A DNA stretch of 64,000 nucleotides, taken from NCBI RefSeq assembly GCF_006345805.1, contig NC_043001.1, forward strand, positions 19,220,001 to 19,284,000, written 5' to 3'. Both the position numbers and the translations under genes were made by a program. The first letter of the stretch is position 1, and each line of letters opens with the position of its first letter. The DNA is from Octopus sinensis (taxonomy: Eukaryota). The notes under the pieces were generated by a model. It did not search any database, had not been told where the DNA came from, and was given only the letters and a program-made list of their open reading frames with translations. Below, in pieces: positions 15,771 through 64,000 of this stretch.

Positions 15771-15808
<38 letters not shown>

Positions 15809-15832: not shown

Positions 15833-15876
<44 letters not shown>

Positions 15877-16244: not shown

Positions 16245-16699
16245 AAGATATAATAGAACAGTAAAATAATAATTTAATAAATATACTTTAATATATACAT
16301 ATATATACACATATATATAAATATATATATGTATATGAAAATTCTAAATATATATAATTGAAAAATAAAATGATAATTCAATAATTAAATACTTTAAAAT
16401 TAAATAAAAAACACAAAGCTATAAAAAGTCATTAAATTGTAATCATAATAAGAAATGTTTCAAATATAGATAAATTCCTCACATAAGCTAACCATATAAT
16501 AAATATACATGTGTAGTATCTATGGATTTAATATTACAAACTATGACAAAATAGACTAAATATCAAATAATATAATACCTAATTAACTTCAATCTAGTAT
16601 TACAATTACATAATCCACCTATATATAATATATATATATATAATATATTATTGTCTCTACTAGAGCCTTAACTAAAGCTCTTTCTATTTTATTTCTAGT

Positions 16700-17460: not shown

Positions 17461-17711
17461 CCTTATTCACCAAATGCCACATATTAGAGAAGGCCCTGAA
17501 TAAAAACAGCGTAGCAAAACAGCGGTGCCCCTGCATGACTGCAGCTCTGAGCTGAAACAACAAAAAAGCAAAAAAACATTTATATATATATATATATATA
17601 TAGGTGTATGTGTGTGTGCATGTGTGTGTGTGTGTATACACACACATATATATATACATATACATATATATACACATGTATATATATATATGCATAACAC
17701 ACATACACACA

Positions 17712-17761
<50 letters not shown>

Positions 17762-18169
17762 AATTATACATATAAATATATTATAAATTTAGAAATACTA
17801 ATTCAAATTTCACAAAATGTAATATATATATATAAATTAGAAAAAAAAACACCTTTTATCAATTCAATAATGAAAAATTAAATTATACCATTTAGAAAAA
17901 TAACATATTATAGAAAGATTAAATATAAGATAAAAAATATAACAATGATTACTTAATCATCGTAATATGTTTTATCTTTATTTTAATCTTTCTATAATAT
18001 GTTATTTTTCTAAATGAGTATAATTTAATTTTTCATTATTGAATTGATAAAAGGTGTTTTTATTTCTAATTTATGTGTATATATATATATATTATATATT
18101 ATATATATTTATATATATATATATTATATATATATTATTATATATATAATATATATATATATACATATA

Positions 18170-18253
<84 letters not shown>

Positions 18254-18301
18254 AATTAAATTGACAGAATAAGAGAAAAAATCATATTTCATGTCTTCTC
18301 T

Positions 18302-19857
18302 ATAAGTTTTTATCAAAGTTGTTTTATATTCTATAATTTTCACGGTCAATATATATTAATTGTTATTGTCTGAGATTTTGGTGTAATTTGAGAGGATAAT
18401 ACAAAAGTTATGGATGATTTAGTGATTTACTGCAAAGCCCATGGCGGCCAAAATTATCAGAACGGTGGCTTTTACTCCGTGTTTTAGTATATTTAACCGA
18501 TGAACTTTAATGTTTTGAATTTGTTTACGTGATGGTTCGTTTGCTAAACATTAGTAAGAATATCTGCAGTGTACTTTGTTAATATAATGCCACTTACTCC
18601 GTTACCAATTCGTCAGCATATTATTAAGCTTCGAAAGAAGGATAATTTAAGTATTGGGTCTATTGCAAAGATTGTTAACAAGTCAAAAAGTGTTGTTCAC
18701 GGTATTCTTAAGGTCTTCGATGATTGGGTAGGGGGTGAAGCAAAAAAGTCTACAGGTAGGCAAGAAAAACGACCAAGAGAGAAGATCGTGCTATGGTAAA
18801 GTTGGTTAAAAAGGACAGATTTAAAACTGCTGCTGCTGTTTCTCGGGAAATGAGCATTGTACTGAAGAAAACGTTATCTCGAAAATCTGTGCCTCATCGT
18901 TTAGTTGAACGTAACCTACAAGCAAGATCACCTGTAGTGAAGCCACTGATCAGCTCCAAAAATAAAAAGTGTCGTCTTACCTTTGCAACCGAACATGTGT
19001 TGTGGCCGCAAGAAAAATGGCAAACGGTGCATTTCAGTGATGAATCTAAGTTTATGTTATTTAACTCAGATGGGAAAGTAGGTGAAAAATTGTCGCCTAA
19101 ATGCCTTAAGACTAGTGTTAAATTCGGTGGAGGAAGTGTCATGGTTTGGGAGATGATATCTGGAGATGGTGTGGGCTCATTGGTGCGATAACACGGAAAG
19201 GTAAATGCAGGAGTTTATAAACAACTTCTAAAAGATCATGTCTTGCCTGTGCTGAGAAATTCAACTAAGCGACCACCCATATTCAAGCAGGACAATGCCC
19301 CGTGTCACAAGGCTAAGGTGGTCATGAACTTCCTCAAGGCTGAAAAGGTTATTATTATGGATTGGCCTACTGAAAGCCCAGATCTCAATCCTATTGAAAA
19401 TGTGTGGAATTTTCTAAGAGAACGTTCGAAAGCCAGAAATCCTAAAACAACCGAGCAATTATGGAATGCCCTTCAGGAAGAATGGAATAAGATCACCTAG
19501 CAAGAAATTGAAAATTTAATTTCCTCATGCAGTCAAAGATGTCAAAGTGTGATTGAAGCTAAAGGGCTTCACACTAAATATTAAATAATTCCAGTATTCT
19601 CTGTCATTTTTTATTATTTTGTAATTTTTTTAACCGTTCTGATCATTTTGGCCGCCATGGGTTTTGCAGTAAATCACTAAATCATCCATAACTTTTTTAT
19701 TATCCTCTCAAATTACACTAAAATCTCAGACAACAACAACTAATATTGTATTTATTGTCCGTGAAAATTATAGAACAGAAAATAACTTTGATAAAAACTT
19801 ATACCTACTTTTCTGGCGAAAACAATGCCGTTCTGAACATTTTGGTCGCGACTGTAT
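18302..19857 (+). mobile_element. Tc1 (DD34E) IR/DR-type transposon, left TIR truncated; found in copy A only
   Basis: Transposase 18587-19584 is frameshifted: HFSDESKF, KFGGGSVMVW, FKQDNAPCH, SPDLNPIENVW. The ~220-bp right TIR has two direct repeats and ends CTGTA-TA. Confidence 0.92.
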
Positions 19858-20439
19858 ATATTATATTTTGTGAAATTTGATTTAGTATTTCTAAATTGAA
19901 ATTTTCCCTGTAACTTTGGAATAATATTCCCTCATATTATATATATAGGTATATACACACACACATATATATATATGTATGTACGTATGTATGTGTGTGT
20001 GTGTGTATGTATGTATATGTATGTATATGTATGTATGTATGTATGTATGTATGCATGCATGTATGTATGTATGTATGTATGTATGTATGTATGTATGTAT
20101 GTATGTATGTATGTATGTATACAAGGTTAGTAGAGTTAGCGGTAGGAATAACCATCTAAGTGATAAGAATATCCCTTTTACTGCCGGTATAAATTACTTA
20201 TGTTATTTAATATGCTGCTTAATATATATAATGTTAATTTAAGGGTTAACATTTAACTGTAAATACGTTGCAACTGCTGCGACAATTATTAACTCGTAAC
20301 TGAACAGTGAATGTGTAAAATACGATGGTCTTAGTGTTATCACATTAGAATTAAAAGTGATAGAATAAAAGTGAAATAATATTATAGTTTTATCACAGGT
20401 AAGGAATAAAACTAATGTGATAAGACTATAATATTATAG

Positions 20440-20870
20440 TCTTATAACAGGTAGAAATAAAAGTAATAAAAGTCATTATTGTGAATTGTTAAAGAGATTC
20501 AAAAGCATACCGGTTTCGTGAATTTACTAATCATTACTTTGAATGCACACCGATTAATGAACGGTGCCTGGCCTACTAGTTCCTGAGTAAAACGATTATG
20601 TGTAAGAGAGGTAAGTTCTGGATTTGGTGCAATTAGGGTAGATATAGATCTGTAATGTGAATGGTGTATGGGATGTATGGGGGTTAGTGGTATTAATTGA
20701 AAGGTTAGTAGTGTTCTGTATTATGTCATGTGTTCACATTAAGTTGTGGAAGAAACATTGTTGATGAAAGTTGCCTCTTTATTCATTCTTTGTTGTACTG
20801 AGGTGTTCTGTGAACATTGATAAAGGGGGAAAATTAGGAAATTAGGATTAAGATTCCTAGCACACCTTTC
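20440..20870 (-). mobile_element. Penelope endonuclease C-terminus plus pLTR with a decayed hammerhead (20505-20546)
   Basis: CARNLNPNFLIFPLYQCSQNTSVQQRMNKEATFIN resembles the C-terminus of the 34694-35173 ORF; GCA..TTCAC-GAAACCGGTA-TGC. Confidence 0.65.
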
Positions 20871-21221
20871 TATGTGTTCACCTACCTGTATCTATCTAAC
20901 AAGTTGCTATTGCTATATATTATATTACCACAGCTATATCTACATTGGTGACAGGGTGCATTATTCTGATATTTTTTTAATAAAGCATACTTCTATATCA
21001 GTGCTTTTCAAACTTTTTGCTGGAGCGGAACCCCAAGGAAACATTCCACTGGCTCGAGGAACCCCTGTGCAATAATTTAAATAGTCTTATGAACACATAT
21101 CTGCACAGGAGAATTAAAAATTACTGCCGACTTTAGCAGTTTTGTAGCTTCTTGCGGATCCCCTGAACTGTACCGGCGGAACCCTGGTTGAAAACCACTG
21201 TTCTATATATTCCATAAACCG

Positions 21222-21400
21222 GCATGGCTGTGTGGTAAGTAGCTTGCTTACTAACCATATGGTTCCGGTTTCAGTCCCACTGTATGGCACCTTGGGCAAG
21301 TGTCTTCTACTATAGCCTCGGGCCAACCAAAGCCTTGTGAGTGGATTTGGTAGATGGAAACTGAAAGAAGCCTGTCATATATATGTGTGTGTGAGTGTGT
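21222..21400 (+). mobile_element. SINE family A head
   Basis: Matches the family-A consensus. Confidence 0.8.
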
Positions 21401-21414
21401 GTGTGTGCGTGTGT

Positions 21415-21455
<41 letters not shown>

Positions 21456-21475
21456 TGCGTGTGTGTGTGTGTATG

Positions 21476-21514
<39 letters not shown>

Positions 21515-21604
21515 AGATTCAGATGAATTTGGTATTTAAGTTGAGGCACCAGAATTTAGTACGGTATTATTCATACAATTTCAAAATAAGATTATTAAAA
21601 TCAA

Positions 21605-21978
21605 AATAAGCAACAAGGGTATCCAGATTTAATGCAGTACGATGGTTTCAAGCAACTCTATTTAATTGAACAATGCAATCATTACATCAATTTAAATGCT
21701 GAGCAATCTTCAGCTGCACAAAGACATAGAATTAAATTAAAACAGCTTAGAAGCTGAAGTGAAGACAGTATGTTCTTTGTCTATCTCCATACCTTCTTAG
21801 AGGTTTTAGTTAAAGTTATATTAATGTGTCCATCTGTTTTAATTTAATTTAATTCTATGTCTTTATGCAGCTGAAGATTGCTCTGCATTTAAATTGATGT
21901 AATGATTGCATTGTTTAATTAAATGGAGTTGCTTGAAACGATCGTACTGCATTACCTCTGGATATCTTTGTTGCTTAT
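21605..21978. repeat. Fold-back element with a hammerhead-like motif in each arm (21632-21719 minus, 21865-21952 plus)
   Basis: Arms of ~140 bp around a ~90-bp spacer. ATGCAG-CTGAAGA..GAAAC-GATC-GTA-CTGCAT; the base of stem II has U-U mismatches. Confidence 0.75.
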
Positions 21979-21982
21979 TTTG

Positions 21983-22028
<46 letters not shown>

Positions 22029-22260
22029 ATGTCCCCCCAACATAACTTGACATCCGATGTTAGTGTGTTTACAGGCCCGTAACTTAGAGGATCGGCAAAA
22101 GAGACCGATAGGATAAGTATTAGGCTTACAAAGAATAAGTCCTGGGGTCGATTTGTTCGACAAAAGGCGGTGCTCCTGCATGGCCACGGTCAGATGACTG
22201 GAACAAATAACGAATAAAAGAATACTAATTAGCCTCTATTTAATTTTTTTTTTCTCACAG

Positions 22261-22528
22261 TTAATGACACTCAATGCCGTGAGATCTGGCCCGAAGATTT
22301 TAAATTTTGGAAGTGGGATAAAATACAAACATTTTTAGATACCCATTCGGAAAAGGAGTCAACAACAACCACTACTCTAACACCAGAAACCACTACTCTA
22401 ACACCAGAAACCACTACTCTAACACCAGAAACCACTACTCTAACACTGGTTGCTTCTTTGGCCACTTTTTTGGTATTAGCGATCATATTTATTCTCTTCT
22501 TAATTTTATGGATATCATTTAGACGAAA
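22261..22528 (+). CDS. Receptor gene A, stalk plus transmembrane exon (268 bp, phase 1-2)
   Basis: ttttttttctcacag|TT AAT..CGA AA|gtaagt. Reads NDTQCREIWPEDFKFWKWDKIQTFLDTHSEKESTTTTTL(TPETTTL)3T-LVASLATFLVLAIIFILFLILWISF-RRK. Confidence 0.9.
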
Positions 22529-23379
22529 GTAAGTAAAGTTTCTGTTCCGACCCCTGTTGTACTCTTTCGCCCAAACTTTCTCTCAGTGTTTCTTCCTGTT
22601 TCTTGAGCAACGCTGCGATGGACTGGCGTCCCGTCCAGCGGGGCGAGGGGGGGACACACATACGCCATAGAAAGCGGGAAACCGGGCCCATCAGCCTGGC
22701 TAGGCTTGAAAAGGGCGAGTACAAAATACAAAGAAAATAACAGTATTAATAAAGATAATTTCTAACAGGGACACAGGGTAGAAATTTTAGGGCTGGATTA
22801 GAAGTGGATACAGTTGTTTAAGTAGAGTAAGATTTAGAGTCCCCAGAACAAAATAAATACAAACCATATCTCAGAGAGATTTGAATACAAAGCGTAAAGA
22901 AACGTAACTAAATTGTGTTGCTTTATTCGTTCAGTCAAAAAATCTATCTCTTATCCGTAATTCTTGTTTGAAGTTGTCTACTCCAGCAGTTTGCTGTTGG
23001 TTTACTCCAGAGACACAAGCATTATGAGTTAACAAAACACTCGTTAATTTACAGTACTTCTACTCTACAACAACCAATTTTAAAAAATCCATGAAAGCTA
23101 TTTATAGTGGACTGTAACCGCCAGAAGTAAGTGTTTTCGTTATAAATACCACACACATAACAACATAGGTGTTGCCAGCCTTTCGCCTAATAATCCCGTT
23201 GGGATCCTCATTCACACTGGTTTAATATTTAAAATATTTTTCTGAAAGAAGAACTGGGTGGTGTTTGGAATCTAAACGTAAATGAACGTACCTAAATCCC
23301 TCAAAATATGTTAGCCGATGCCTTACAGATCTTGTCGTTCACGTACCACTTAATGATATTTATTTGGTATTTCCTCCAG

Positions 23380-23473
23380 ACGAAACTCAACTCCAGATGA
23401 TAAATTCGCCAGTTCAAATGTTCAAAATGTAAATGAGAATAATCATCCGAATGAAGAAATCTATGAAAATACG
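23380..23473 (+). CDS. Receptor gene A, cytoplasmic exon 1 (94 bp, phase 2-0)
   Basis: tttcctccag|A CGA..ACG|gttagt. Reads RNSTPDDKFASSNVQNVNENNHPNEEIYENT. Confidence 0.8.
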
Positions 23474-24013
23474 GTTAGTACTTACTCTCTTCCTCTCTCT
23501 AATGTGTGTAAGACTCTATTATCTGTTTCAGGTGGCAGGGGTTAGTTTGAAGAACGTTTAGTTACCAAAATGACCAGACGGAACTTCACTTTAAACAATT
23601 GGCCTGTTTTATATTTCGTTTGGTGAGGTTTGTGTGAGATTGCCAGTGGTGGTATTGAATTTATTGTTGTTGTTGCTGTTCCAGGTCTGTCCAACTGGAG
23701 AAAATCTATAAACAAATGCATTCCAGTAGAGAACATCATATCTTTTGAAAGATAGTGCGTGTAAGACTCTATGATCTGTTTCAGGTGGTAGGGTGTAGTT
23801 TGAAGAACGTTTAGTTACCAAAATGATCAGACGGAACTTCACTTTAAACAATTGGCCCCTGTTTTATTACATCGAAAAAATAAAATACAATGTAGACTTA
23901 GGTGGGATTTGAACTCAAAACGTAAGGAGATATAACAAAATACTATAAGGTGACCGATTCTACCATCCACTCATTCACACGGGTTTATATATTTTATTTT
24001 TATTTCATTACAG

Positions 24014-24166
24014 ACAACTACTTCCTTCTGCAATAGTAGTATAGCGAATAAAAACACTTCAACAACAACAAACCCAAGAAACATCAGTGAGAAAACATAT
24101 GAAAACCTAGAAGAAGAGTCTTCTCCAAGATATGATAACTGGCGTTTAACGAACTGGAAATTGTGA
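24014..24166 (+). CDS. Receptor gene A, terminal exon with a broken ITAM
   Basis: tttcattacag|ACA. Reads TTTSFCNSSIANKNTSTTTNPRNISEKTYENLEEESSPRYDNWRLTNWKL*. Confidence 0.75.
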   Translation, partial: TTTSFCNSSIANKNTSTTTNPRNISEKTYENLEEESSPRYDNWRLTNWKL

Positions 24167-24389
24167 ACAATGAGAACAGAAATAACTCTTAATCACGTCG
24201 TTGAAAAATAAAATCTACTGGTGATAACGATACGTTTTATAACTTAATAATTAATCAAAATCTGTTACTAGTAACAATCTGTTACTGTTCGATAACCAAA
24301 ACCTATCGATAGATGATAACAATGTCTTGATGGTTTTCAATATAATATATCACGTGATACCATTATTGGAGTTATCTCACTTCCTTTTT

Positions 24390-25275
24390 GTTTTTAGATA
24401 TTAAAAATGTGAGATTTCTTCCCAGAAGACGGAGGAAATTGATTCCAACGTCAGATGAGACGAGCACCGATCTTCAGGAAAGAAATCTTATATTTGAAAT
24501 GTTGGCAGAAGGGAGATTAAAGATAGATTCCGACGATGAAATCTATTACAATTATTTTGGACCAGCAGCTAAGTTTACGTTGACATCATCTATAGACAGT
24601 GTTACGCCCTCTTCTTTGATGGGGCAGTATGAATTCTTTGTACGCCATCTCATAAGAACTGTTACCCCTCTGAGAATCTTGCTCCTATGTGTAGTGGCCT
24701 TTGTCTCTGGGACAATCTTGCATTATGAGCACGAATTCTTTGAATTTCATGTTGTCAGAAGTACCGAGACATTGAGGCCAATCTTATTTGATTATCTCTT
24801 TCTCAATTGATTTCCAGTCTGCTTTATAAAGATTGAAATTGGATAGTTTTTAGGTACTCCCCATAAGCCGATCGTCTTCGGATTTTTTTGGTTTATACTT
24901 GGTCAGCACTATTACATTTCATCCGGGACTAGCGTCGGTGTAACTTTCACGTTATGGACGAAATCCATATTGTTTGTGAAACAGAGATCAAGTCTACTAT
25001 CTGCCTGGTTGGTTAGAGTATTACTTGCTCTATGTTGGCGAGGCTGAGCAGGGATTTCCACCTGATTTTGAGTACATTGTGTCATTTCTGAGAGGAAAAG
25101 TTCCTCAGGTCATCATACGTTGGACAGGCTGAAGTCTCCCATAAGAAGTACACTGTTGTGTTGTTCTAGATTAGTTAAGATTTCTATTCTTCCAATACAG
25201 TCTTCGAATAGGTCCGTATGATTTGGAGCATCTAGTGGACGATAAGTGCTACATATAACGATATCGAGTTGTCAG
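24390..25275 (-). mobile_element. CR1/Jockey-type LINE APE endonuclease remnant (paralog ~59190-60060)
   Basis: CSTYRPL, VLLMGDFS, DSRLDLCFTNN and NFNLYKADWKSI motifs on the minus strand. Confidence 0.75.
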
Positions 25276-25282
25276 ACAGACA

Positions 25283-25333
<51 letters not shown>

Positions 25334-25667
25334 GCATACATATACATATATGTAAACGCACATATATATATACTTATATATATGTATCCACTTTCTTTTC
25401 TTTCCTTTCCTGAGCGTCCAATAACACTGTACTAATTCCACGTCCTCGCGTTGTTGTTTTTCCTTGCTTGTTCATGTTTGGATTGACTTAGCCGTCACTA
25501 GGCGGTTCGGCAAAAGAGAACGATATAATAAGTACTGGGCTTACAAAGAATAAGTCCCGGGGTCGAATTGCTCGATTAAAGGCGGTGCTGCAGCATGGCC
25601 GCAGTCAAATGACTGAAACAAGTAAAGGAGTTAAAAGAGTATCATATATGCATATACATATATATAA

Positions 25668-25718
<51 letters not shown>

Positions 25719-26026
25719 CATATATATATATGTATGTGTATAAGTGTGTGTGTGTGTGTATGTGTGTGTGTGTGTGTTGTGTGTGTGTGTGTGTGTGTTG
25801 TGTGTGTGTGTGTGTGTGTTTGTGTGTGTGTGTGACAACTCGATATCGTTATATTTCGAAGACTGCCTTGCAGGAATAGAAATCTTAACCAAACTAGAAC
25901 AATATAGGGAGAGTTCACGAAATAAACAAAAGACGGAGACAGGTGGTGTACAAAACAAACAGATATATTGGTATAATGCTCAGGAATTGAAAAAAAAGTC
26001 TTTTACGTTTTGAGCCTACGCTCTTC

Positions 26027-26098
<72 letters not shown>

Positions 26099-26099
26099 C

Positions 26100-26260
26100 G
26101 AAGTAGTGCCTGTGTGGTAAGTAGCTTGCTTACGAACCAAATGGTTCCGGGTACAGTCACACTGCTTGGCACCTTAGGTAAGTGTCTTCTACTATAGCCT
26201 TGGGCCGACCAAAGCCTTGTGAGTGGATTTGGTAGACGGAAACTGACAGAAGCCCGTCGC

Positions 26261-26550: not shown

Positions 26551-26597
<47 letters not shown>

Positions 26598-26601
<4 letters not shown>

Positions 26602-27243
26602 AAAAAAGGTTTGAAAATGCAATTTAAACGATGTTTATTTACTTAACCGGTTTCACTCTTTGGAAAAAGATTGTCAAAAGTAACATTAAAAGTATCATTG
26701 AATAATATGGGTTCAAAAATTTTTTTTACATAATTGTCACATTGAATATTATGCATTCAAAAAAGTTTTTTACATAATTGTAACATTGGATATTATGAAT
26801 TCAAAAATGTTTTTTTATACAAAATTGTCACATTACATGTATAAATATAGTGTTTGGTAACAGAGAAGTTCAATAGTATGATGAGAATATTTGGAAAAAT
26901 TGGCAGAAAAGGATAAAACAAATATATTATTGGAAATTTGGTTGCGTTAATTATTGGTTGTCGCAAATTGTCACATTACATGTATATATATATACAGCCT
27001 TTGGTATATATATACAATCTTTTGACAGCAAAAATTAAAATGGATTTTTTATACATCTCAGAATATTTTAAGTTGAAGGCGAGAATGTGTTGTTACTAAC
27101 CTGTTTGTTTTAGCAGAAAGGTTGAATTGAGAGAAAAAAGGTTGTACCCAGTGTGGTGTATACTCCCCTTCAAGCATCAATGGTTTTGGGGTTATCAGGA
27201 GGTTAGTATGCCTGCTGGTCAAGCAGCGTCTGTTTGTCACACA

Positions 27244-27277
<34 letters not shown>

Positions 27278-27463
27278 ACACACACACACACACACATAGT
27301 ATACAAACACACACCACATACACACAACACACACACACACACAGAACACACACACACACACAACGCACCCACATATATAATATATACACACAACACACAA
27401 ATATAACATGTATTTATATATAATATACACACACATATATATATATAACACACATAGACACAC

Positions 27464-27509
<46 letters not shown>

Positions 27510-28062
27510 TCCATACATAATATAAATATCACACAAATACACCTAGCATATATATACACATACAATATACAAATACAGCATGTATATAATACACATACAC
27601 AATATATGCATGCAATATACGTACGCAATACATACATATAATATATATATATATACAATGCATATACATATATACATGTATACATATAAATAGTGTTTAC
27701 ATACACATACATAGATATACCACATATACACACAATATACATACATACAATGCATACACATACACGTACGCATACATATAATATATATAAACACACACAC
27801 ACATAACATACATACACAATGCATACATATATATACACGCAATGCATATACATGTATTCATGCACATATGGCACACCTACAATATACATATATACAATGC
27901 ACACATACACACACATATATACACTTAATTGTACACATACATATACAATACACATACATACAATATACATATACACAATGCGCATGCAAATAATGCACAT
28001 GTTTATACACGCATAAACATGCAAATAAATATACACACACACATATACATACACATATATAT

Positions 28063-28103
<41 letters not shown>

Positions 28104-29483
28104 CATACATACATGCACATACATATATTTTTTCACACACATACACATACATATATATATAAAAAATTCACACACACACCCACACACACAAATTACAAAC
28201 CTATAGCGTACACACTCAAATATATCTCTACATACCGCACACACACACAAACAATGTACTCACATATACATACATACCATGCATATACACACACAACACT
28301 CACATATATATATATATATAAAAACAAATACACATGTAAATACATACACACGTATACAATGCTCACACACACACACACACACATACACACACACACGCAC
28401 ACAGTGCACACACACACACATATATATACACACGTGCACACACACACACACACAACGCGCGCACACACACACACATACACACACACGCACACAGTGCACA
28501 CACACACACACATATATATACACACGCGCATACACACACACAATGTGCACACACACACACACACACAACACTCACACACATACATAACCTACATATATAT
28601 AATGCATGCGTGTGTATTCCACGTATGTGTGCGGTCAATGCCCGCTAGTGTGTCCTATGCGTGCCGATGCGTGCATGTGCCCGCCCGCACGATATGCTGT
28701 GAGTGTGCGCGTGTCCCTGTGTGCTTGCTCTGGATGTTAGAGTATGTTTAGTTGTGGTCTGTATTTTTGAATAAGATTACTTTCCTTATTTATTCGTATT
28801 TGGTCTGTGGTGTTGTCCGAGCATTGGTATAGTGGGAAGACTAAGAATTTGGGGGACTTATTGTGTGCACAAAGGTCTAAGTGTCCACTTAGTGGTATCT
28901 GTCTTGTGGAGGGGTCCCTCAGTTGTTGTCGGTGAACTGTCATTCTTTCTCTGAGGGTAAGGCTCGTTTGCCCTATGTAGTCTTCGTGGTATCCTTCACA
29001 CCTTATGACGTAGAGTAAATTTTTTGATGCGCACGTGAAATTATTTTTTATGATGAATGTGTGTCCCGAGTGGAACTTGTACGACGATCCCTCAATGAGG
29101 TGGATGCAGGTCTTGCAGTTGGGGCGCCCACATTTTTTGATGGTGGGCGGTGGGTTTGTGTTGTGTAATTTTGCGTTGGTGAGGAGGTTTTTTAGGGATT
29201 TAGGTTGTCTCTTACTTTTTATTATTTTATGAGCTGCCAGTATTTTTTTCAGGCGTGGGTCTTGATTTAGTTGTGGAATGTTGTTGTATATAATAGTGTA
29301 AGCTTCTGCATTCCTTGGGTTGTGTGTTGAGAGATAGGGGAGGCTATTTACTGTACTGTGGATGTGTGTGTGCACGTGTGTATATATGTGTGTGTGTGTG
29401 TGCACTGTGTGCGTGTGTGTGTGTATGTGTGTGTGTGTGTGTGTGAGCATTGTATACGTGTGTATGTATTTACATGTGTATTT

Positions 29484-29528
<45 letters not shown>

Positions 29529-31203
29529 AGTGTTGTGTGTGTATATGCATGGTATGTATGTATATGTGAGTACATTGTTTGTGTGTGTGTGCGGTATGTA
29601 GAGATATATTTGAGTGTGTACGCTATAGGTTTGTAATTTGTGTGTGTGGGTGTGTGTGTGAATTTTTTATATATATATGTATGTGTATATGTGTGAAAAA
29701 ATATATGTATGTGCATGTATGTATGTATGTATATGTATATATATATATATATGTATGTATATATATATGTGTATGTATATGTGTGTGTGTGTATATTTAT
29801 TTGCATGTTTATGCGTGTATAAACATGTGCATTATTTGCATGCGCATTGTGTATATGTATATTGTATGTATGTGTATTGTATATGTATGTGTACAATTAA
29901 GTGTATATATGTGTGTGTATGTGTGCATTGTATATATGTATATTGTAGGTGTGCCATATGTGCATGAATACATGTATATGCATTGCGTGTATATATATGT
30001 ATGCATTGTGTATGTATGTTATGTGTGTGTGTGTTTATATATATTATATGTATGCGTACGTGTATGTGTATGCATTGTATGTATGTATATTGTGTGTATA
30101 TGTGGTATATCTATGTATGTGTATGTAAACACTATTTATATGTATACATGTATATATGTATATGCATTGTCTATATATATATATATTATATGTATGTATT
30201 GCGTATGTATATTGCATGCATATATTGTGTATGTGTATTATATACATGCTGTATTTGTATATTGTATGTGTATATATATGCTAGGTGTATTTGTGTGATA
30301 TTTATATTATGTATGGATGTGTGCGTGTGTTGTGTGTGTGTGTGTGTGTGTGTGTTGTGTGTCTATGTGTTATATATATATGTGTGTGTATATTATATAT
30401 AAATACATGTTATATTTGTGTGTTGTGTGTATATATTATATATGTGGGTGCGTTGTGTGTGTGTGTGTTCTGTGTGTGTGTGTGTGTTGTGTGTATGTGG
30501 TGTGTGTTTGTATACTATGTGTGTGTGTGTGTTGTTGTGTGTGTGTGTGTATATGTGTGTGACAAACAGACGCTGCTTGACCAGCAGGCATACTAACCTC
30601 CTGATAACCCCAAAACCATTGATGCTTGAAGGGGAGTATACACCACACTGGGTACAACCTTTTTTCTCTCAATTCAACCTTTCTGCTAAAACAAACAGGT
30701 TAGTAACAACACATTCTCGCCTTCAACTTAAAATATTCTGAGATGTATAAAAAATCCATTTTAATTTTTGCTGTCAAAAGATTGTATATATATACCAAAG
30801 GCTGTATATATATACATGTAATGTGACAATTTGCGACAACCAATAATGAACGCAACCAAATTTCCAATAATATATTTGTTTTATCCTTTTCTGCCAATTT
30901 TTCCAAATATTCTCATCACACTATTGAACTTCTCTGTTACCAAACACTATATTTATACATGTAATGTGACAATTTTGTATAAAAAAACATTTTTGAATTC
31001 ATAATATCCAATGTAACAATTATGTAAAAAAACTTTTTTGAATGCATAATATTCAATGTGACAATTATGTAAAAAAATTTTTTGAACCCATATTATTCAA
31101 TGATACTTTTAATGTTACTTTTGACAATCTTTTACCAAAGAGTGAAACCGGTTAAGTAAATAAACATCGTTAAAATTACATTTTCAAACCTTTTTTCTTA
31201 TAT
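26598..31203 (-). mobile_element. 5'-truncated Penelope (GIY-YIG, 28737-29360) inside ~1.85-kb inverted repeats
   Basis: KKCGRPNCKTC..KNLLYVIRC..YIGQT..RERMTVHR. Arm 26598-~28445 is the reverse complement of ~29362-31203. Confidence 0.9.
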
Positions 31204-31233
31204 AATCCCACTCGTGCGATACCCCCAACTCAA

Positions 31234-31289
<56 letters not shown>

Positions 31290-34433: not shown

Positions 34434-36955
34434 TAGTAAAAAGTGAAAAAACTACAGAAGGCTTAAAGGTTAAAAAATATATATATTTGCGTCAATATGT
34501 CTGAAGAATATTAAAAAAAATTTTTCTTACAATGACATAATTTAGAAGAAAGACCTGTTTCGCGTTTAGCTTTTCAAATTTCTTACGACGTTAGGTTTAT
34601 GTTGAATAGAGTTATCGTTATGTTTATGTTTCAAAGAGTTCTAAATAAGGGGAGGTAATGAGTGATTTCTTGCGGTGTAAGGGAGATAATCGCTTAAAAT
34701 TTTTTTCCTTTCCCTTGGTGTGAATTTCTCTGTATCAGTATGTTGGCATGGTTAAGTCTGGGCTTGTACTTTTCAATGAAGAATGTTTCCTCGTTTAGTC
34801 TAATTTGTGTTGATGATCCGATAGCACATTGGTAAAATGGAAAGATTAAAAATTGTGGTAGTAGTTGCTTTGCGCATTTCTCAATGTGCTCACTAAAAGG
34901 TATCATTCTGTATTCTGGGAATGCAATCTGTTGTCGATGCAGTGTGCATCTACGTGTGAGTGATAGTCCCGTGGATCCCACGTAGTCTTGGTGGCAGCCT
35001 GAGCATTTTATGACATAAATTATGTTTTCAGAGGCACAAGTAAAGTTAGATTTGATCTTGAATTTCTGTCCCTCTTTAAAGAGGAATTCTGATCCTTCTA
35101 GCAGGTTTGGACATGTTGCACAGTTCGATCTACCACATTTTTTTACTTTTGCATCCGTAATTTCAGAAAACAATTTTGCCTTTGTGAGAATCTTTTTAAG
35201 TGATTTAGGTTGTTTGTAGCTTTTAATGATTTGGTGTATGTTTAGAATTTCCTTTAATTTGGGGTCCTTATGAAATTCTGGGTGATGATGGTGAAGGCTT
35301 CTTTGTTTCTGGGGTTGTATGTAGATATGTAAGGTAGTATTTTCGGGGAAGGTGTGTTGTTGTGTTGAACTTTTCTTAAAGTTTCTATGTTGATTTCTGT
35401 TGCACGTCTGATCCCATCCTCTATGAGTTGAGCTGGGTAATGTCTGTCAATTAGGGTGTTTTTGAGTTCTTGCAGTCTAAAGTTCCTGGTATTTTGTTCT
35501 GACACTATTGTGCATATCCTTCTTGCAAGGTTGAAGGGGATGTTTGTTTTAGTGTGTCTTGGGTGGCATGAATTAAAAAGAAGGTATTGTTTGGCGTCTG
35601 TGGCTTTGTAAAAAATGTCTGTTTCTATTTTAAGGTTAATTTTTTAATTAGTATATCCAAGAACGGGAGCTCCTTTTGGTTGTATTCCATTGTGAACTGT
35701 ATATTTGGGTTTATGCTGTTCAATAGGTTTTTAAATTTTAGGAGTTTATCTGTGTTTTCATTCCAGAGTATAAAACAATCGTCTAAGAATCGTTTCCAAT
35801 TATCTTTTATGTATTGAGAAAGGGGGTTTCCAAAGATTGATAAAGATTCCTGGTAAATGATTATTTCCATGTAGCCCATTGTTAGGTTCGCAATGACTGG
35901 TGCTGCCCTTGTACCCATAGCAATTCCGGATTTTTGACGGTAAAATGTATTGTCAAACATGAAGTGGTTATTATGTAGGATGAATTCAATTGATTTAGTA
36001 ATGAATTCTTTACTGATCCTTTTTGGTATTTCTTCCGGAAATTGGTCCAGCCAGAACTGTATTGCCTCTAGTCCATAATTATGAGGTATACTGGTATATA
36101 AGTTAACTACATCAAATAAAACCAGGAATGTTTCTTCTTTGGCTTTTTTTGGAAGGTGGTTTAACATATCTAAGTCATCTCTGATATGGCTATCGATATG
36201 TTTAAGGAAGGGTTTCAGGAGGATGTCCATAAATAGACTTAGTCTGTGTGTTTCACAGGTTGGGCCAGCTACAATGGGTCGTAGTTTTAGGTCCCCCGGG
36301 TTAGGTGTGTGTATGTATGTCTTTGGTGATTTTTTAATGGTTTCATTTATAATTTGGCTTTTATGAATTTTTGGCAGACCATAGAAAAGGCTAGGTTTGC
36401 ATTTAAAGTTTGTTAGAAAGTCAATCTCTTTGGTTGTTAGTTCCTTTTCATGGGTTTTAATTAGTGAAGATGGAGTTTTCATTATTTTTTGTAGGGTGTA
36501 ATTGGCATTGAGAAATGCGCAAAGCAACTACTACCACAATTTTTAATCTTTCCATTTTACCAATGTGCTATCGGATCATCAACACAAATTAGACTAAACA
36601 AGGAAACATTCTCATTGAAAAGTACAAGCCCAGACTTAACCATGACAACATACTGATACAGAGAAATTCACACCAAGGGAAAGGAAAAAAATTTAAGCGA
36701 TTATCTGCCTTACACCGGAATAAATCACTCATTACCTCCCCTTATTTAGAACTCTTTGAAACATAAACATAACGATAACTCTATTCAACATAAACCTAAC
36801 GTCGTAAGAAATTTGAAAAGCTAAACGCGAAACCGGTCTTTCTAAACTATGTCATTGTAAGAAAAAATTTTTTTAATATTCTTCAGACATATTGACGCAA
36901 ATATATATATTTTTTAACCTTTAAGCCTTCTGTAGTTTTTTCACTTTTTACTATT

Positions 36956-40000: not shown

Positions 40001-41237
40001 ACACGTGATAGACTGGCGGTTGCACGGGTGCGAAAGCTACGTTGTTATCCTCATTCCGTAAAAGGTGGCTTTTAACGGGTGGAGAGCTGAACCATCAGAC
40101 TAGGGTCTGAAAGTTTACCACACCATAGTGGGTTACACCATGGTTCCTCTGCTTTGTGGCAGAAGTAGGAAGAAAAAGTGAGAGAAAGTTGTGGTGAAAG
40201 AGTACAGTGAGGTTCACCACCCTCCCCGCCGGAGCCTCGTGGAGCTTAGGTGTTTTTTGCTCAATAAACACTCACAATGCCCGGTCTGGGAATCGAAACC
40301 GCGTTCTTACGACCGCGAGTCCGCTGCCCTAACCACGGGGCCATTGCGCCTCCACTGATGCTGCTGTTATCGATGATGATGATGATGATGATGGAGGAGG
40401 GGGAAATGAAAGGTGGAATTAGTGATGTTTGTCGTGGATTATGGAAGGAGTATTGTGTAATGGTCGTCGAAGGCGATTCATGGCGTTCAGTTTTGTTATT
40501 GCGTATGAAATGCATGTTTGCGTATGACTGAATGAGCGCATCTTATAAACTGTACTATCTGGATGTTAAGCGAAGTGTTTTGTTTATCGTCTGGTTCTGT
40601 TATATTGTCATTTGCTCGTTTCATAGGAAGTGTAAATAGAGGGGAATGTCAGGAAAAATACTAGGAAACTCGTGAGTAAATGATCAGAAGGGAGTGGTTA
40701 GAAACAAAAAACAGAGAGAGGGGGAGAGCGAGACAGTTAGATAGAGAGAAACAGTGAGAGAGGGAAACAAAGAGAGAGAGAGAGAGAGAGAGAATCCGGT
40801 GGGAATTTTTGCTGTATTAATTATTTCTCTCCTCATTCTTTCATTGTTTAGTTTGTTTCTGTTTGTGGAGGTTGTTCAACCACAGAAGAGGCTTAAAACA
40901 TTTACAGTTAATATCTTGGCTAACTTTTCATTTTATTTCTATTTAATCCCGTTCAACCAAGGAGCCATCAATTTGAAACTATTTCTTAATTTTCTTTTTC
41001 TTTCTTTTTCTACTTATTGAACTGAAAATGGGAAAAGGTAAATATAATTTTCTAATTTTTTAAGGGCTTTTTTCCTCTTCGATTCCGTAAAATTTCTGAT
41101 CGATCTTTAATTCGTTAGCATTGTCAAGCACTTTCCCACCTTTGTTGTTGTTGTTGTTTTTGTTGTTGTTGTTCTTCTTCTTATTATTATTATTATTATT
41201 ATTCTTTTTCCTCCCCTCCTCCTCCTCCTCTTCTTCT

Positions 41238-50711: not shown

Positions 50712-50900
50712 ATTTTACCATTTGTAATGCGAAAAAGAGCCTTCGTTTCCAAATTGATCCATGCAATTGCGCGAAATATTATAACGGTGGTACTTATATG
50801 GATTGTCCAGCTGGTACAATTGCGACATATGCAGGCTGTGAACGTGATGATAAACCATGTCAGAGTAAACCTTGGTTTCGATGCGGCATCAATATTCCAT
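50712..50900 (+). CDS. Receptor gene B, CBM14-like ectodomain exon (189 bp)
   Basis: ttttttcag|..|gtaagt. Reads FTICNAKKSLRFQIDPCNCAKYYNGGTYMDCPAGTIATYAGCERDDKPCQSKPWFRCGINIP. Confidence 0.85.
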
Positions 50901-54246: not shown

Positions 54247-54472
54247 TTAATGACACTCAATGCCGTAAAATCTGGCCCGAAGATTTTAAATCTTGGAACA
54301 GGGATAAAATACAAACATTTTTAGATACCCATTCGGGAAAGGAGTCAACAACAACCACTACTCCAACATCAGAAACCAATACCATAACACTGGTTGCTTC
54401 TTTGGCCACTTTTTTGGTATTAGCGATCATATTTATTCTCTTCTTAATTTTATGGATATCATTTAGACGAAA
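54247..54472 (+). CDS. Receptor gene B, stalk plus TM exon (226 bp, phase 1-2)
   Basis: ttctcacag|..|gtaagt. Reads NDTQCRKIWPEDFKSWNRDKIQTFLDTHSGKESTTTTTPTSETNTITLVASLATFLVLAIIFILFLILWISFRRK; 42 bp shorter than A and in frame. Confidence 0.9.
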
Positions 54473-57171: not shown

Positions 57172-57265
57172 ACGAAACTCAACTCCAGATGATAAATTCG
57201 CCAGTTCTAATGTTCAATATGTAAATGAGAACAATCATACGTATGAAGAAATCGATGAAACTATG
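57172..57265 (+). CDS. Receptor gene B, cytoplasmic exon 1 (94 bp)
   Basis: tttcctccag|..|gttagt. Reads RNSTPDDKFASSNVQYVNENNHTYEEIDETM. Confidence 0.8.
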
Positions 57266-58794: not shown

Positions 58795-58998
58795 ATATCT
58801 TCTTCCTTCTGCAATAGTAAGGAATCGGATAAAAGTACTACAACAACGAACACAAGAAACATTAGTGAGGAATCATATGAAGTCCTAGAAGAAAAATCTT
58901 CTCCGCAATATAATAAACTGTTTTTTACGGACTATAATGAAGAACACCAAGTGAACAATGGGAACAGAAATAACATTTATCATATCGTTGAAGACTAA
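58795..58998 (+). CDS. Receptor gene B, terminal exon with a canonical ITAM
   Basis: ttttattttag|ATA. Reads ISSSFCNSKESDKSTTTTNTRNISEESYEVLEEKSSPQYNKLFFTDYNEEHQVNNGNRNNIYHIVED*. Confidence 0.8.
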   Translation: MSSSFCNSKESDKSTTTTNTRNISEESYEVLEEKSSPQYNKLFFTDYNEEHQVNNGNRNNIYHIVED

Positions 58999-60184
58999 AA
59001 TCTACTGGTGATAACGATACATTTTATAACTTAATAATTAATCAAAATCTGTTACTAGTAACAATCTGTTACTGTTCGATAACCAAAACCTATGGATAGA
59101 TGATAACAATGACTTGATGGTTTTCAATATAATATATCACGTGATACCATTATTGGAGTTATCTCACTTCCTTTTCGTTTTTAGATTTTAAAAATGTGAG
59201 ATTTCTTCCCTGAAGACGGAGGAAATTGATTCCAACGTCAGACGAGACGAGCCCCCGTCTTCAGGAAAGAAATCTTATATTTGAAATGTTGGCAGAAGGG
59301 AGATTAAAGATGGATTCCGACGATGAAATCTATTACAATTATTTTGGACCAGCAGCTAAGTTTACGTTGACATCATCTATAGACAGTGTTACGCCCTCTT
59401 CTTTGATGGGGCAGTATGAATTCTTTGTACGCCATCTCATAAGAACTGTTACCTCTCTGAGAATCCTGCTCCTATGTATAGTGGCCTTTCTCTCTGGGAC
59501 AATCTTGCATTATGAGCACGAATTCTTTGAATTTCATGTTGTCAGAAGTACCGAGACATTGAGGCCAATCTTATTTGATTATCTCTTTCTCAATTGATTT
59601 CCAGTCTGCTTTATAAAGATTGAAATTGGATAGTTTTTAGGTACTCCCCATAAGCCGATCGTCTTCGGATTTTTTTGGTTTATACTTGGTCAGCACAATT
59701 ACATTTCATCCGGGACTAGCGTCGGTGTAACTTTCACGTTATGGACGAAATCCACATTGTTTGTGAAACAGAGATCAAGTCTACTATCTGCCTGGTTGGT
59801 TAGAGTATTACTTGCTCTATGTTGGCGAGGCTGAGCAGGGATTTCCACCTGATTTTGAGTACATTGTGTCATTTCTGAGAGGAAAAGTTCCTCAGTTCGT
59901 CATACGTTGGACAGGCTGAAGTCTCCCATAAGAAGTACACTGTTGTGTTGTTCTAGATTGGTTAAGATTTCTATTCTTCCAAGACAGTCTTCGAATAGGT
60001 CCGTATGATTTGGAGCATCTAGTGGACGATAAGTGCTACATATAACGATATCGAGTTGTCACACACACAAACACAAACACACACACACACACACATATAT
60101 ATATATTTATATATTTATATACACATACATATACATATATGTAAACACATATATACATACATTATATATAATAAATATATATAA

Positions 60185-61111: not shown

Positions 61112-61306
61112 ATATATACTAAGCAATAAGGGTTTAGCAACGAATTGCCTTACCACATACCGAATTTAGAAATAGCAGTCAAAGGGTTATAGCTATTTCT
61201 TCTACTAAAAAGGGAGATCTCAGTAAAAACAGCAATTGGAAGGCTGACACAAACAGGTAAGAGAGAATGAATTAACTGCAATCTATCAAACATTTTTAAA
61301 AGTTAT

Positions 61307-61410
61307 CCACGGACGTACGTTTCGAAATCAAGTTTTAGGAAAGCATAAGAATTAAATATTAAATATTAAATAATTCTATCTTACCGAAACTTCTTTTCTC
61401 TTCAGCGTAG
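61307..61410 (-). ncRNA. Type I hammerhead ribozyme, unit 1
   Basis: CTACG-CTGAAGA-GAAA..TTTC-GAAAC-GTAC-GTC-CGTGG; stem I keeps pairing through a G-U wobble. Confidence 0.85.
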
Positions 61411-61907
61411 AATACTATAATCATAAATGATTATATATTGAATTTTGAGATACTAGGAGGCACCAACTCAACTCAGTATCAGAGCGAGCTAGAATCCGCA
61501 ACTAGTATCACCGAATTCAAATTTGTGAATGAAACGATTGTGTCAACAGCCCCTTCCCACCCGCGTGTAGCCAAAACAAGATGCTGTGGTCATCTACTGA
61601 GATAAAATATGGTTATCCGTAATAATGAAGGGTGAAATTAATTAATTTGGAATAATTATCAATTACACCAAGTAGTCTTCGGCATGTAAAAGCCTCATTC
61701 GAGGAAAATTTAAGTAATACTAAGCAATAAGGGTTTAGCAACGAATTGCCTTACCACATACCGAATTTAGAAATAGCAGTCAAAGGGTTATAGCTATTTC
61801 TTCTACTAAAAAGGGAGATCTCAGTAAAAACAGCAATTGGAAGGCTGACACAAACAGGTAAGAGAGAATGAATTAACTGCAATCTATCAAACATTTTTAA
61901 AAGTTAT

Positions 61908-62012
61908 CTACGGACGTACGTTTCGAAATCAAGTTTTTAGGAAAGCATAAGAATCAAATATTAAATATTAAATAATCCTATCTTACCGAAACTTCTTTTC
62001 TCTTCAGCGTAG
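61908..62012 (-). ncRNA. Type I hammerhead ribozyme, unit 2
   Basis: Same as unit 1 with a perfect stem I (CTACG/CGTAG). Confidence 0.88.
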
Positions 62013-62507
62013 AATACTATAATCATAAATGATTATATATTGAATTTGAGATACTAGGAGGCACCAACTCAACTCAGTATCAGAGCGAGCTAGAATCCGC
62101 AACTAGTATCACCGAATTCAAATTTGTGAATGAAACGATTGTGTCAACAGCCCTTCCCACCCGCGTGTAGCCAAAACAAGATGCTGTGGTCATCTACTGA
62201 GATAAAATATGGTTATCCGTAATAATGAAGGGTGAAATTAATTAATTTGGAATAATTATCAATTACACCAAGTAGTCTTCGGCATGTAAAAGCCTCATTC
62301 GAGGAAAATTTAAGTAATACTAAGCAATAAGGGTTTAGCAACGAATTGCCTTACCACATACCGAATTTAGAAATAGCAGTCAAAGGGTTATAGCTATTTC
62401 TTCTACTAAAAAGGGAGATCTCAGTAAAAACAGCAATTGGAAGGCTGACACAAACAGGTAAGAGAGAATGAATTAACTGCAATCTATCAAACATTTTTAA
62501 AAGTTAT

Positions 62508-62612
62508 CTACGGACGTACGTTTCGAAATCAAGTTTTTAGGAAAGCATAAGAATCAAATATTAAATATTAAATAATTCTATCTTACCGAAACTTCTTTTC
62601 TCTTCAGCGTAG
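62508..62612 (-). ncRNA. Type I hammerhead ribozyme, unit 3
   Basis: Same as unit 2. Confidence 0.88.
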
Positions 62613-63108
62613 AATACTATAATCATAAATGATTATATATTGAATTTTGAGATACTAGGAGGCACCAACTCAACTCAGTATCAGAGCGAGCTAGAATCCG
62701 CAACTAGTATCACCGAATTCAAATTTGTGAATGAAACGATTGTGTCAACAGCCCCTTCCCACCCGCGTGTAGCCAAAACAAGATGCTGTGGTCATCTACT
62801 GAGATAAAATATGGTTATCCGTAATAATGAAGGGTGAAATTAATTAATTTGGAATAATTATCAATTACACCAAGTAGTCTTCGGCATGTAAAAGCCTCAT
62901 TCGAGGAAAATTTAAGTAATACTAAGCAATAAGGGTTTAGCAACGAATTGCCTTACCACATACCGAATTAGAAATAGCAGTCAAAGGGTTATAGCTATTT
63001 CTTCTACTAAAAAGGGAGATCTCAGTAAAAACAGCAATTGGAAGGCTGACACAAACAGGTAAGAGAGAATGAATTAACTGCAATCTATCAAACATTTTTA
63101 AAAGTTAT

Positions 63109-63213
63109 CTACGGACGTACGTTTCGAAATCAAGTTTTTAGGAAAGCATAAGAATCAAATATTAAATATTAAATAATTCTATCTTACCGAAACTTCTTTT
63201 CTCTTCAGCGTAG
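63109..63213 (-). ncRNA. Type I hammerhead ribozyme, unit 4
   Basis: Same as unit 2. Confidence 0.88.
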
Positions 63214-64000
63214 AATACTATAATCATAAATGATTATATATTGAATTTTGAGATACTAGGAGGCACCAACTCAACTCAGTATCAGAGCGAGCTAGAATCC
63301 GCAACTAGTATCACCGAATTCAAATTTGTGAATGAAAACGATTGTGTCAACAGCCCCTTCCCACCCGCGTGTAGCCAAAACAAGATGCTGTGGTCATCTA
63401 CTGAGATAAAATATGGTTATCCGTAATAATGAAGGGTGAAATTAATTAATTTGAATAATTATCATTACACCAAGTAGTCTTCGGCATGTAAAAGCCTCAT
63501 TCGAGGAAAATTTAAGTAATACTAAGCAATAAGGGTTTAGCAACGAATTGCCTTACCACATACCGAATTTAGAAATAGCAGTCAAAGGGTTATACCTACA
63601 ACTTATAAACAAGGGCAAAAGAAAAAAGTTCTAATGCCAAATATGCCGAAAATAGACAAATTGTCAATAACCATATAAGTTAACAATATAAACTCGCATC
63701 TCGAAGTAAGCCGACAGAAATTTCTAAAAAAATCCGTTATTATCGTATCGGTCCCAATTTCAGAGTTAATTCATAAGAATTTTCTCCTTGTCAGCGATAA
63801 ATACGTAAGACATAAATGAAATACTTACTCATACCCATGGAAGAAGCAAGCGCTAAGTCATGAGCAGACCTAAGTACCTCAAATATATCCAAAATAGAAA
63901 ATCTCTGTCGGCTTACTTCGAGACGCGTGTTTATATTGTTAAATTATATGGTTATTGACACAATATGTCTATTTTCGGCATATTTGGCGTTAGAAGTTTT

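Follow-up and report, generated by a model that had tools for sequence, protein, structure and literature searches.

A candidate ITAM in one subfamily of octopod-restricted, predicted single-pass membrane proteins at a tandem locus of Octopus sinensis

Draper of Drosophila, a member of the CED-1 family, reportedly carries an ITAM (immunoreceptor tyrosine-based activation motif) that is bound by the kinase Shark once Src42A has phosphorylated it. The tandem-SH2 kinases Syk and Shark have been reported in invertebrates, with Syk present in molluscs too, and in the oyster the receptor CgIgR carries an ITAM and co-precipitates CgSyk (PMC6994640). The immune and self/non-self recognition receptors of cephalopods are almost unknown, and the literature that we searched contained no paper that ties an ITAM to any cephalopod protein or names the loci described here, and it yielded nothing usable on an octopus Syk. 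Our analysis concerns a window, by which we mean the whole stretch of 64,000 nucleotides (nt) that was analysed, from Octopus sinensis (GCA_006345805.1, CM016863.1, approximately 19,220,001-19,284,000), which holds a tandem pair of gene copies, A and B, of LOC115211618. Self-comparison of the window places these copies in a tandem segmental duplication of 90-97% identity, with A at about 6.6-25.4 kb and B at about 38.5-60.2 kb, both duplicates being broken up by transposon insertions and microsatellites.

The high point of this locus is the C-terminal tail of copy B, which encodes a canonical ITAM, E-E-S-YEVL-EEKSSPQ-YNKL, as an earlier reading of the sequence (hereafter the original prediction) had claimed. 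Positions 58867-58920 of the forward strand read GAG GAA TCA TAT GAA GTC CTA GAA GAA AAA TCT TCT CCG CAA TAT AAT AAA CTG, giving EESYEVLEEKSSPQYNKL, and this segment lies in frame behind a strongly predicted transmembrane (TM) helix that is followed by RRKR. Copy B matches the consensus (D/E)-x-x-Y-x-x-(L/I)-x(6-8)-Y-x-x-(L/I), whereas copy A as assembled (YENL-x7-YDNW) does not. Exons were reconstructed by combining open frames with AG/GT boundaries and consistent phases, which gave five exons per copy with canonical splice sites over gene spans of about 9.9-24.2 kb (copy A) and 41.0-59.0 kb (copy B). The spliced translation of copy B is exactly that of XP_029636088.1 (RefSeq isoform X1), and is also 100% identical to XP_029636090.1, while that of copy A is exactly XP_029636091.1 (RefSeq isoform X3), so the frame in which the ITAM is read is the annotated frame; the O. 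vulgaris and O. bimaculoides annotations, made independently, use the same one. The ATG has an in-frame TGA 54 nt upstream of it and no AG acceptor between the two, which identifies that Met as the N-terminus. The features of copy B are as follows.

41028-41037, forward strand: exon 1, ATGGGAAAAG then gt, encoding M-G-K plus one base (start of the spliced model equal to XP_029636088.1)
50712-50900, forward strand: exon 2, encoding the Cys-rich N-terminal domain; its hypervariable patch occupies 50759-50878
54247-54472, forward strand: exon 3, a conserved QCRxIWP segment, the Thr/Pro stalk, the TM helix LVASLATFLVLAIIFILFLILWISF and RRK
57172-57265, forward strand: exon 4, the juxtamembrane tail, with YVNE at 57218-57229 and PYEEI (YEEI at 57242-57253)
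58795-58998, forward strand: coding part of exon 5 including the stop, without a nucleotide difference from O. vulgaris B over 225 nt
58867-58920, forward strand: the ITAM, EES-YEVL-EEKSSPQ-YNKL, with YEVL at 58876-58887 and YNKL at 58909-58920

Two observations on isoform structure stand beside these models. RefSeq isoform X2 joins exon 1 of copy A (MGN, 9974-9983) to exons 2-5 of copy B (50712 onward) across about 40 kb, skipping the rest of A, and in O. bimaculoides X1 and X2 are alternative tail cassettes of a single gene; it may be that the duplicated units serve as alternative exon sets.

The bare ITAM pattern is not rare in this AT-rich window, where [DE]xxYxx[LI]x6-8Yxx[LI] was found five times in the six-frame translation, four of the five being 'YIYIYI' runs from TA microsatellites. 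Chance expectation was assessed by shuffling the 101-residue tail of copy B, and in these shuffles the same pattern arose at a frequency of 0.07%, Yxx[LI]x6-8Yxx[LI] at 0.3% and the stricter YxxL-x6-8-YxxL at 0.013%. The tail contains only two leucines, and both sit at the Y+3 position.

Database searches indicate that copies A and B belong to a gene family of small single-pass membrane proteins that appears to be found only in octopods. All 13 close proteins come from O. sinensis, O. vulgaris and O. bimaculoides, and a distant branch comprises O. bimaculoides LOC106871247 and a protein of Argonauta hians; in O. sinensis, four family genes lie inside about 150 kb. All members share an M-G-(N/K) start whose ATG is preceded, 54 nt upstream and without an intervening acceptor, by an in-frame stop, a Cys-rich N-terminal domain, a QCxxIWP...W segment and a Thr/Pro stalk, followed by an invariant TM helix, RRKR and an acidic tail that is rich in Ser, Thr and Asn and holds several tyrosines. 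A Pfam scan of six members returned no family at threshold, its sub-threshold matches coming from the TM helix and low-complexity sequence, and an HMMER profile run against 1.84 billion representative sequences recovered the family itself, an O. bimaculoides fragment and the distant octopod branch, with no wider homologues. A lone teleost match in the latter search was rejected as spurious, reflecting YEEI and TM composition. Vertebrate ITAM adaptor families gave no match in Pfam, the PDB or the representative library.

Across this family the ITAM takes the form Y-E-x-L, a gap-free spacer of seven residues and Y-(D/N)-K-L in seven of the eight copies that retain both tyrosines, namely copy B of O. 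sinensis and of O. vulgaris, LOC115211668, LOC115211728, two more O. vulgaris genes and the O. bimaculoides X2 form, and changes among these copies fall mainly on the 'x' positions. The original prediction had staked its reading on conservation of the YxxL-x7-YxxL spacing among homologues, and this is borne out within the Octopus subfamily and breaks down at greater depth, where the ITAM is missing from the distant relatives (LOC106871247 and the Argonauta homologue), which carry other Tyr motifs. In BLASTP comparisons PYEE(I/V) is the sole tail motif common to the B-type tail and the distant branch. Because that branch shares PYEEI and not the ITAM, the distribution points to an ITAM that is an innovation of one subfamily on an older PYEEI-bearing tail rather than a family-wide feature. 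We also considered an ancient first half-ITAM, since MAFFT paired the first ITAM Tyr with YQRI of the distant branch, and dropped the idea when BLASTP backed only PYEEI.

We lean slightly towards a model in which copy B acts as a self-contained activating receptor, with clustering leading to phosphorylation of the ITAM by a Src-family kinase and docking of Syk or Shark. Its fast-evolving, eight-cysteine ectodomain would face outward on a Thr/Pro mucin-type stalk, and the TM helix together with RRKR would anchor the protein with its C-terminus in the cytoplasm. The acidic, disordered tail of about 100 residues would then present, on the cytoplasmic side, PYEEI and, within the last exon, the ITAM (YEVL-x7-YNKL). 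For Src-family kinases the classical SH2 ligand is YEEI. Clustering driven by a ligand could plausibly lead such a kinase to phosphorylate both ITAM tyrosines, after which a tandem-SH2 kinase, Syk or Shark, would dock on the phosphorylated motif.

Several features of the family weigh against this model, and together they give some room to an alternative that we regard as unlikely, though not to be dismissed lightly, in which the two YxxL elements are not a docking ITAM for Syk or Shark at all; they would instead be tyrosine-based YxxPhi signals for sorting or endocytosis, separate single SH2 sites, or functionally neutral sequence kept by the youth of the family and by gene conversion. The TM segment and exon 4 are near-identical among paralogues even at synonymous sites, as expected of a young or homogenised family, so conservation of the ITAM is not statistically separable from general similarity, and nucleotide identity across the TM and tail exons is too high to demonstrate purifying selection on the motif. 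One of four ITAM motif columns varies, against nine of 14 other columns. O. bimaculoides X1, which has a B-type tail, carries YEDQ in place of the first YxxL; the lack of an ITAM in the distant branch, with its other Tyr motifs, points the same way, and in O. sinensis the second half of the motif is gone from copy A while the rest of the gene is kept. Set against this alternative are the low odds (0.01-0.3%) that a tail of this composition would contain the motif by chance, the placement of both leucines at Y+3, the acidic context and exact seven-residue spacer in all intact copies, and the co-occurrence of the ITAM with PYEEI. Furthermore, exon 5 of copy B shows no differences from O. vulgaris B over 225 nt where about four would be expected, exons 4 and 5 both being nucleotide-identical between the species against a background divergence of about 2%. 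Motif-specific conservation and the ratio of nonsynonymous to synonymous substitution rates (dN/dS) on the TM and tail segment were dropped as evidence, as too few substitutions were available and such tests are underpowered.

Evidence on the predicted ectodomain comes from the evolution of exon 2. A hypervariable patch is sharply bounded within this exon (50759-50878 in copy B, 15477-15596 in copy A), with 28 mismatches in 120 nt (23%) when O. sinensis B is set against O. vulgaris B, whereas the flanking intron differs by about 2%. The ratio of nonsynonymous to synonymous differences (pN/pS) is 1.6-2.3 between species and exceeds 1 in six of six comparisons, with all cysteines kept. Within O. 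sinensis, A and B differ in exon 2 by 11 nonsynonymous and no synonymous changes, and in each species the two copies are more alike than either is to its orthologue, a combination that points to gene conversion plus diversifying change. This pattern suggests that the exon 2 domain evolves like an exposed recognition surface.

The fold of this ectodomain, which spans about 110 residues with eight Cys, is approachable only by distant likeness. Its pattern C-x-F-(x)-D-P-C-x-C-x-x-Y-x-x-C resembles the core of CBM14, and the distant member LOC106871247 scores 13.7-15.2 bits against PF01607 (E 0.02-0.07), below the cut-off of 22.1, while A and B give no match to that family. A family profile searched against the PDB returned as its sole match squid chitin-binding beak protein 3 (7BWE), a weak one at E=0.56. 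The N-terminal domain is thus possibly peritrophin-A/CBM14-like, which we offer as a lead only. An AlphaFold2 model built on an 11-sequence family alignment has a mean predicted local distance difference test score (pLDDT) of 40, with the TM helix at residues 113-143 as its sole confident part and a pLDDT of about 30 over the N-terminal domain. The stalk that follows varies in repeat number, with 3.8 perfect 21-nt units (TTLTPET) in copy A and one in copy B. At this same position RefSeq isoform X4 is without 45 nt of the A stalk (22367-22446), with non-canonical boundaries, and the gap looks like a repeat-number allele in the RNA-seq data rather than an intron.

Orientation in the membrane is predicted to be N-out/C-in. 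The TM segment is invariant and very hydrophobic, with no D, E, K or R, and it has RRKR on its C-side and a neutral to acidic flank on its N-side, a net charge difference that favours a cytoplasmic C-terminus. No family member has a signal peptide or an N-terminal hydrophobic segment. The predicted placement of a Cys-rich domain of 110 residues outside the cell follows from the positive-inside rule and analogy; the conserved Met-Gly start and the basic clusters in some paralogues could also suggest a cytoplasmic, myristoylated N-terminus. We consider it very improbable, however, that the topology is reversed or the proteins are not surface receptors, with a cytoplasmic Met-Gly N-terminus (possibly myristoylated, its cysteines binding Zn or lipid) and a Tyr-rich C-terminus in the lumen or outside the cell, which would make the 'ITAM' irrelevant. 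Such an arrangement would accommodate the missing signal peptide, the invariable M-G-(N/K) start with a polybasic stretch next to it in some paralogues and the poorly modelled N-terminal domain, but it sits badly with RRKR directly on the C-side of a helix whose N-side is neutral to acidic, with a Thr/Pro stalk of variable copy number ahead of that helix, with exon 2 evolution of the exposed-surface type, and with database likenesses that are all to extracellular chitin-binding domains.

Copy A shares this architecture and differs in its tail. Its features are as follows.

9974-9983, forward strand: exon 1, ATGGGAAACG then gt, encoding M-G-N
15430-15618, forward strand: exon 2, the Cys-rich domain
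22261-22528, forward strand: exon 3, the stalk and TM helix, with the 21-nt unit TTLTPET repeated 3.8 times at 22367-22446
23380-23473, forward strand: exon 4, with NVNE and NEEIYENT (23450-23473), PYEEI lost and a YEN motif gained, the same state as in O. vulgaris A
24014-24166, forward strand: coding part of exon 5 as assembled, ending ...YDNWRLTNWKL with the stop TGA at 24164-24166
24089-24142, forward strand: the ITAM remnant, EKT-YENL-EEESSPR-YDNW, with one A of the family AAA absent at 24137-24138
24139-24192, forward strand: the former frame past the deletion, which still reads LAFNELEIVNNENRNNS*

Positions 24089-24142 read EKTYENLEEESSPRYDNW, so that copy A encodes EKT-YENL-EEESSPR-YDNW as had been proposed, and it has TATGATAACTGG where copy B has TATAATAAACTG. 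The claim that A lacks a single A relative to B likewise holds, and comparison with O. vulgaris A and B, O. sinensis LOC115211668 and LOC115211728, and O. bimaculoides shows that only O. sinensis A departs from the family AAA: it reads TAT-GAT-AAC-TGG, where every other copy examined reads TAT-(G/A)AT-AAA-CT(G/A). Beyond the missing base, the other frame of copy A from 24139 encodes LAFNELEIVNNENRNNS*, identical to the C-terminus of LOC115211668 and differing from it by one synonymous nucleotide. A second truncation lies close by, in that the short '...NRNNS*' end of A and LOC115211668 results from a 1-bp insertion, TCTTAATCAC versus TCTTATCAC (window 24185-24200), that deletes the terminal SYHVVEK, including the last tyrosine; truncation of the tail by small indels thus recurs in this octopod family.

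Changes in the A tail extend beyond this base and are older than it. In both species copy A has NEEI in place of YEEI (Y to N), with PYEEI lost, and shows a new IYENT as well as YENL where other copies have YE(V/A/D)L, so that two YEN motifs have been gained; among YxN motifs, A has YENT and YENL where B has one, YVNE. The loss of PYEEI and the YEN gains are common to both species, which places this remodelling of the A lineage ahead of the split between O. sinensis and O. vulgaris. The O. vulgaris A orthologue (locus L001), which sits upstream of B as in O. sinensis, carries a 1-bp insertion where exon 2 begins, with a stop six codons on (L001 9911-9933), a GAA to TAA change directly after YENL and between the two YxxL (L001 18690-18710), and a 2-bp deletion further along exon 5 (L001 18756-18770), with AAA kept intact. 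With these lesions O. vulgaris A is a pseudogene, and a stretch of its exon 5 (AAT...CCAAGTG) seems to have been converted from B. Read together, the A sequences point to a decaying or remodelled copy that has lost its Src-type site and gained two pY-x-N-type motifs, and on this view the second ITAM half would have been lost twice, independently, in O. vulgaris by the TAA stop and in O. sinensis by the 1-bp deletion.

Whether the missing base is real bears directly on that scenario, and we judge that it probably is. The competing explanation, to which we assign a substantial if minority share of probability, is a long-read consensus error in the O. sinensis assembly, in which case the true copy A would encode YENL-x7-YDKL, a full ITAM, and finish with the normal ...LAFNELEIVNNENRNNS. 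Over 36.6 kb of orthologous sequence (720 substitutions), 82 single bases are absent in O. sinensis compared with 53 in O. vulgaris (p=0.016), and when derived 1-bp deletions are polarised with the paralogues the counts become 21 and 2, a signature of uncorrected long-read consensus errors that gives substance to the earlier remark on 1-bp indel noise elsewhere in the window and tells against a real deletion. The out-of-frame remainder of copy A is also fully preserved, with its single synonymous difference from LOC115211668. The RefSeq YDNWRLTNWKL protein derives from the same assembly (the isoform X3 locus is byte-identical to window 7974-26166) and therefore lends the A frameshift no independent support. 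In favour of a real deletion, 13 of the excess deletions cluster in a transposon-rich intron at 14.0-18.8 kb, and outside it, in unique sequence, the counts are 3 versus 2, for which reason the global asymmetry was set aside as proof of an artefact at 24137. The run concerned is, moreover, just three A's long; the O. vulgaris orthologue is decaying with three lesions, so that a real frameshift would be expected in an unconstrained A tail; and RefSeq gave the A model no low-quality flag, which is weak evidence. The cluster itself, 13 O. sinensis-specific single-base deletions at 14000-18800 of which most fall in runs of 2-4 bases in intron sequence of transposon origin, looks like unpolished long-read error, and as a practical matter single-base deletions in this assembly need a check against reads before they are interpreted as frameshifts.

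The original prediction had left copy A as either a hemi-ITAM variant or a consensus error. The first option falls away, as the A motif ISEKTYENL has no acidic triplet before its Tyr, lies in a C-terminal tail and is accompanied by no lectin domain, none of which fits the definition of a hemITAM, and the second stays plausible on the terms given above. The choice itself overlooked the O. vulgaris A pseudogene with its three lesions and the earlier remodelling of the A lineage.

A broader and distinctly speculative reading, which we hold to be rather improbable at present, is that octopods evolved their own non-immunoglobulin immune-type receptors de novo by wiring a diversifying peritrophin-like domain to a de novo ITAM and a Src-docking PYEEI, in a tandem cluster that includes ITAM-less or decoy variants and YxN variants such as copy A. 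The outward domain would in that case possibly bind chitin or another glycan, under diversifying selection and within-species gene conversion, and the octopod cluster would be the cephalopod counterpart of the paired activating and non-activating receptor clusters of vertebrates. In this lineage-restricted, tandemly duplicated family, an ectodomain patch that evolves about 10 times faster than the adjacent introns is joined to a tail that bears a textbook ITAM, which makes the family a testable candidate for coupling recognition to tyrosine-kinase signalling in octopus cells. Copies A and B and the O. vulgaris pseudogene further provide a natural series comprising a full ITAM, its first half only and a dead gene.

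The remainder of the window contains several features that we record here.

18548-19497, forward strand: a Tc1/mariner-type transposase remnant (HTH_Tnp_Tc3_2, DDE_3) in the intron between exons 2 and 3 of copy A
24358-24807 and 59214-59594: a reading frame that stays open for 127-150 codons, immediately 3' of both stops, conserved between A and B and without a Pfam match
26551-28452 and 29357-31280: an inverted repeat between the copies, with arms of about 1.9 kb at 94% identity, rich in TG/TA microsatellite-like sequence
35628-36527, reverse strand: a reverse-transcriptase open reading frame (RVT_1) between the copies
61116-63598: about four tandem copies, 99% identical, of a unit of about 601 bp, with a repeated open frame NTIIINDYILNFEILGGTNSTQYQSELESATSITEFKFVNETIVSTAP... 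that has no Pfam match

In the self-comparison, the stretch of A that holds the transposase remnant (17.8-22.0 kb) has no counterpart in B. The open frame of 127-150 codons could be 3' untranslated region, a transposon fragment or another small gene.

Comparison with known systems helps to place copy B. The closest taxonomic precedent for ITAM-Syk coupling is the oyster CgIgR, likewise a mollusc single-pass receptor with a classical ITAM on the ligand-binding chain itself (PMC6994640). It differs in having five immunoglobulin (Ig) domains, whereas the octopod family has a small eight-Cys non-Ig domain and no signal peptide; our family searches returned no CgIgR-like protein, and no Pfam family is common to both. 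Draper offers a parallel as an invertebrate receptor with its own ITAM that works with a Src-family kinase and a tandem-SH2 kinase. Its ectodomain of epidermal growth factor repeats, signal peptide, longer non-canonical spacer and wide conservation nevertheless set it apart from a family restricted to octopods. Dectin-1 and CLEC-2 couple a glycan-type domain to a Syk tyrosine motif, and the single YxxL of copy A superficially recalls their hemITAM, yet they are type II C-type lectins whose motif is N-terminal and follows an acidic triplet.

The transmembrane adaptors LAT, NTAL and PAG also have no signal peptide (type III insertion) and carry multi-tyrosine tails. LAT uses the Grb2-type pY-x-N consensus, which the two Y-E-N motifs of copy A fit. 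Their ectodomains are very short, however, and a CxxC palmitoylation site lies in juxtamembrane position, whereas the octopod family has a large Cys-rich ectodomain and no Cys after the TM segment (WISFRRKRN); overall, despite the lack of a signal peptide, the family does not fit the LAT type. CBM14 proteins, to which the ectodomain is likened by C-x-F-(x)-D-P-C-x-C-x-x-Y-x-x-C and by sub-threshold matches, differ in being secreted and in having signal peptides.

The motif itself is closest to that of the vertebrate chains DAP12, FcR-gamma, CD3-zeta and Ig-alpha/beta, with which copy B shares the consensus D/E-x-x-Y-x-x-L-x7-Y-x-x-L in an acidic, disordered tail. The ectodomains of those chains are minute and their TM segments pair through a charged residue, whereas copy B combines an uncharged TM segment with an ectodomain of about 110 residues on the same chain. 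In vertebrates an ITAM is typically divided between two exons, and the whole ITAM of copy B lies within one, a difference that points to convergent origin. We conclude that copy B is probably best described as ITAM receptor-like, not a homologue of any known ITAM chain, and that it appears to be convergently evolved and restricted to octopods. If this is true, the locus would be a clean case of convergent ITAM invention outside vertebrates.

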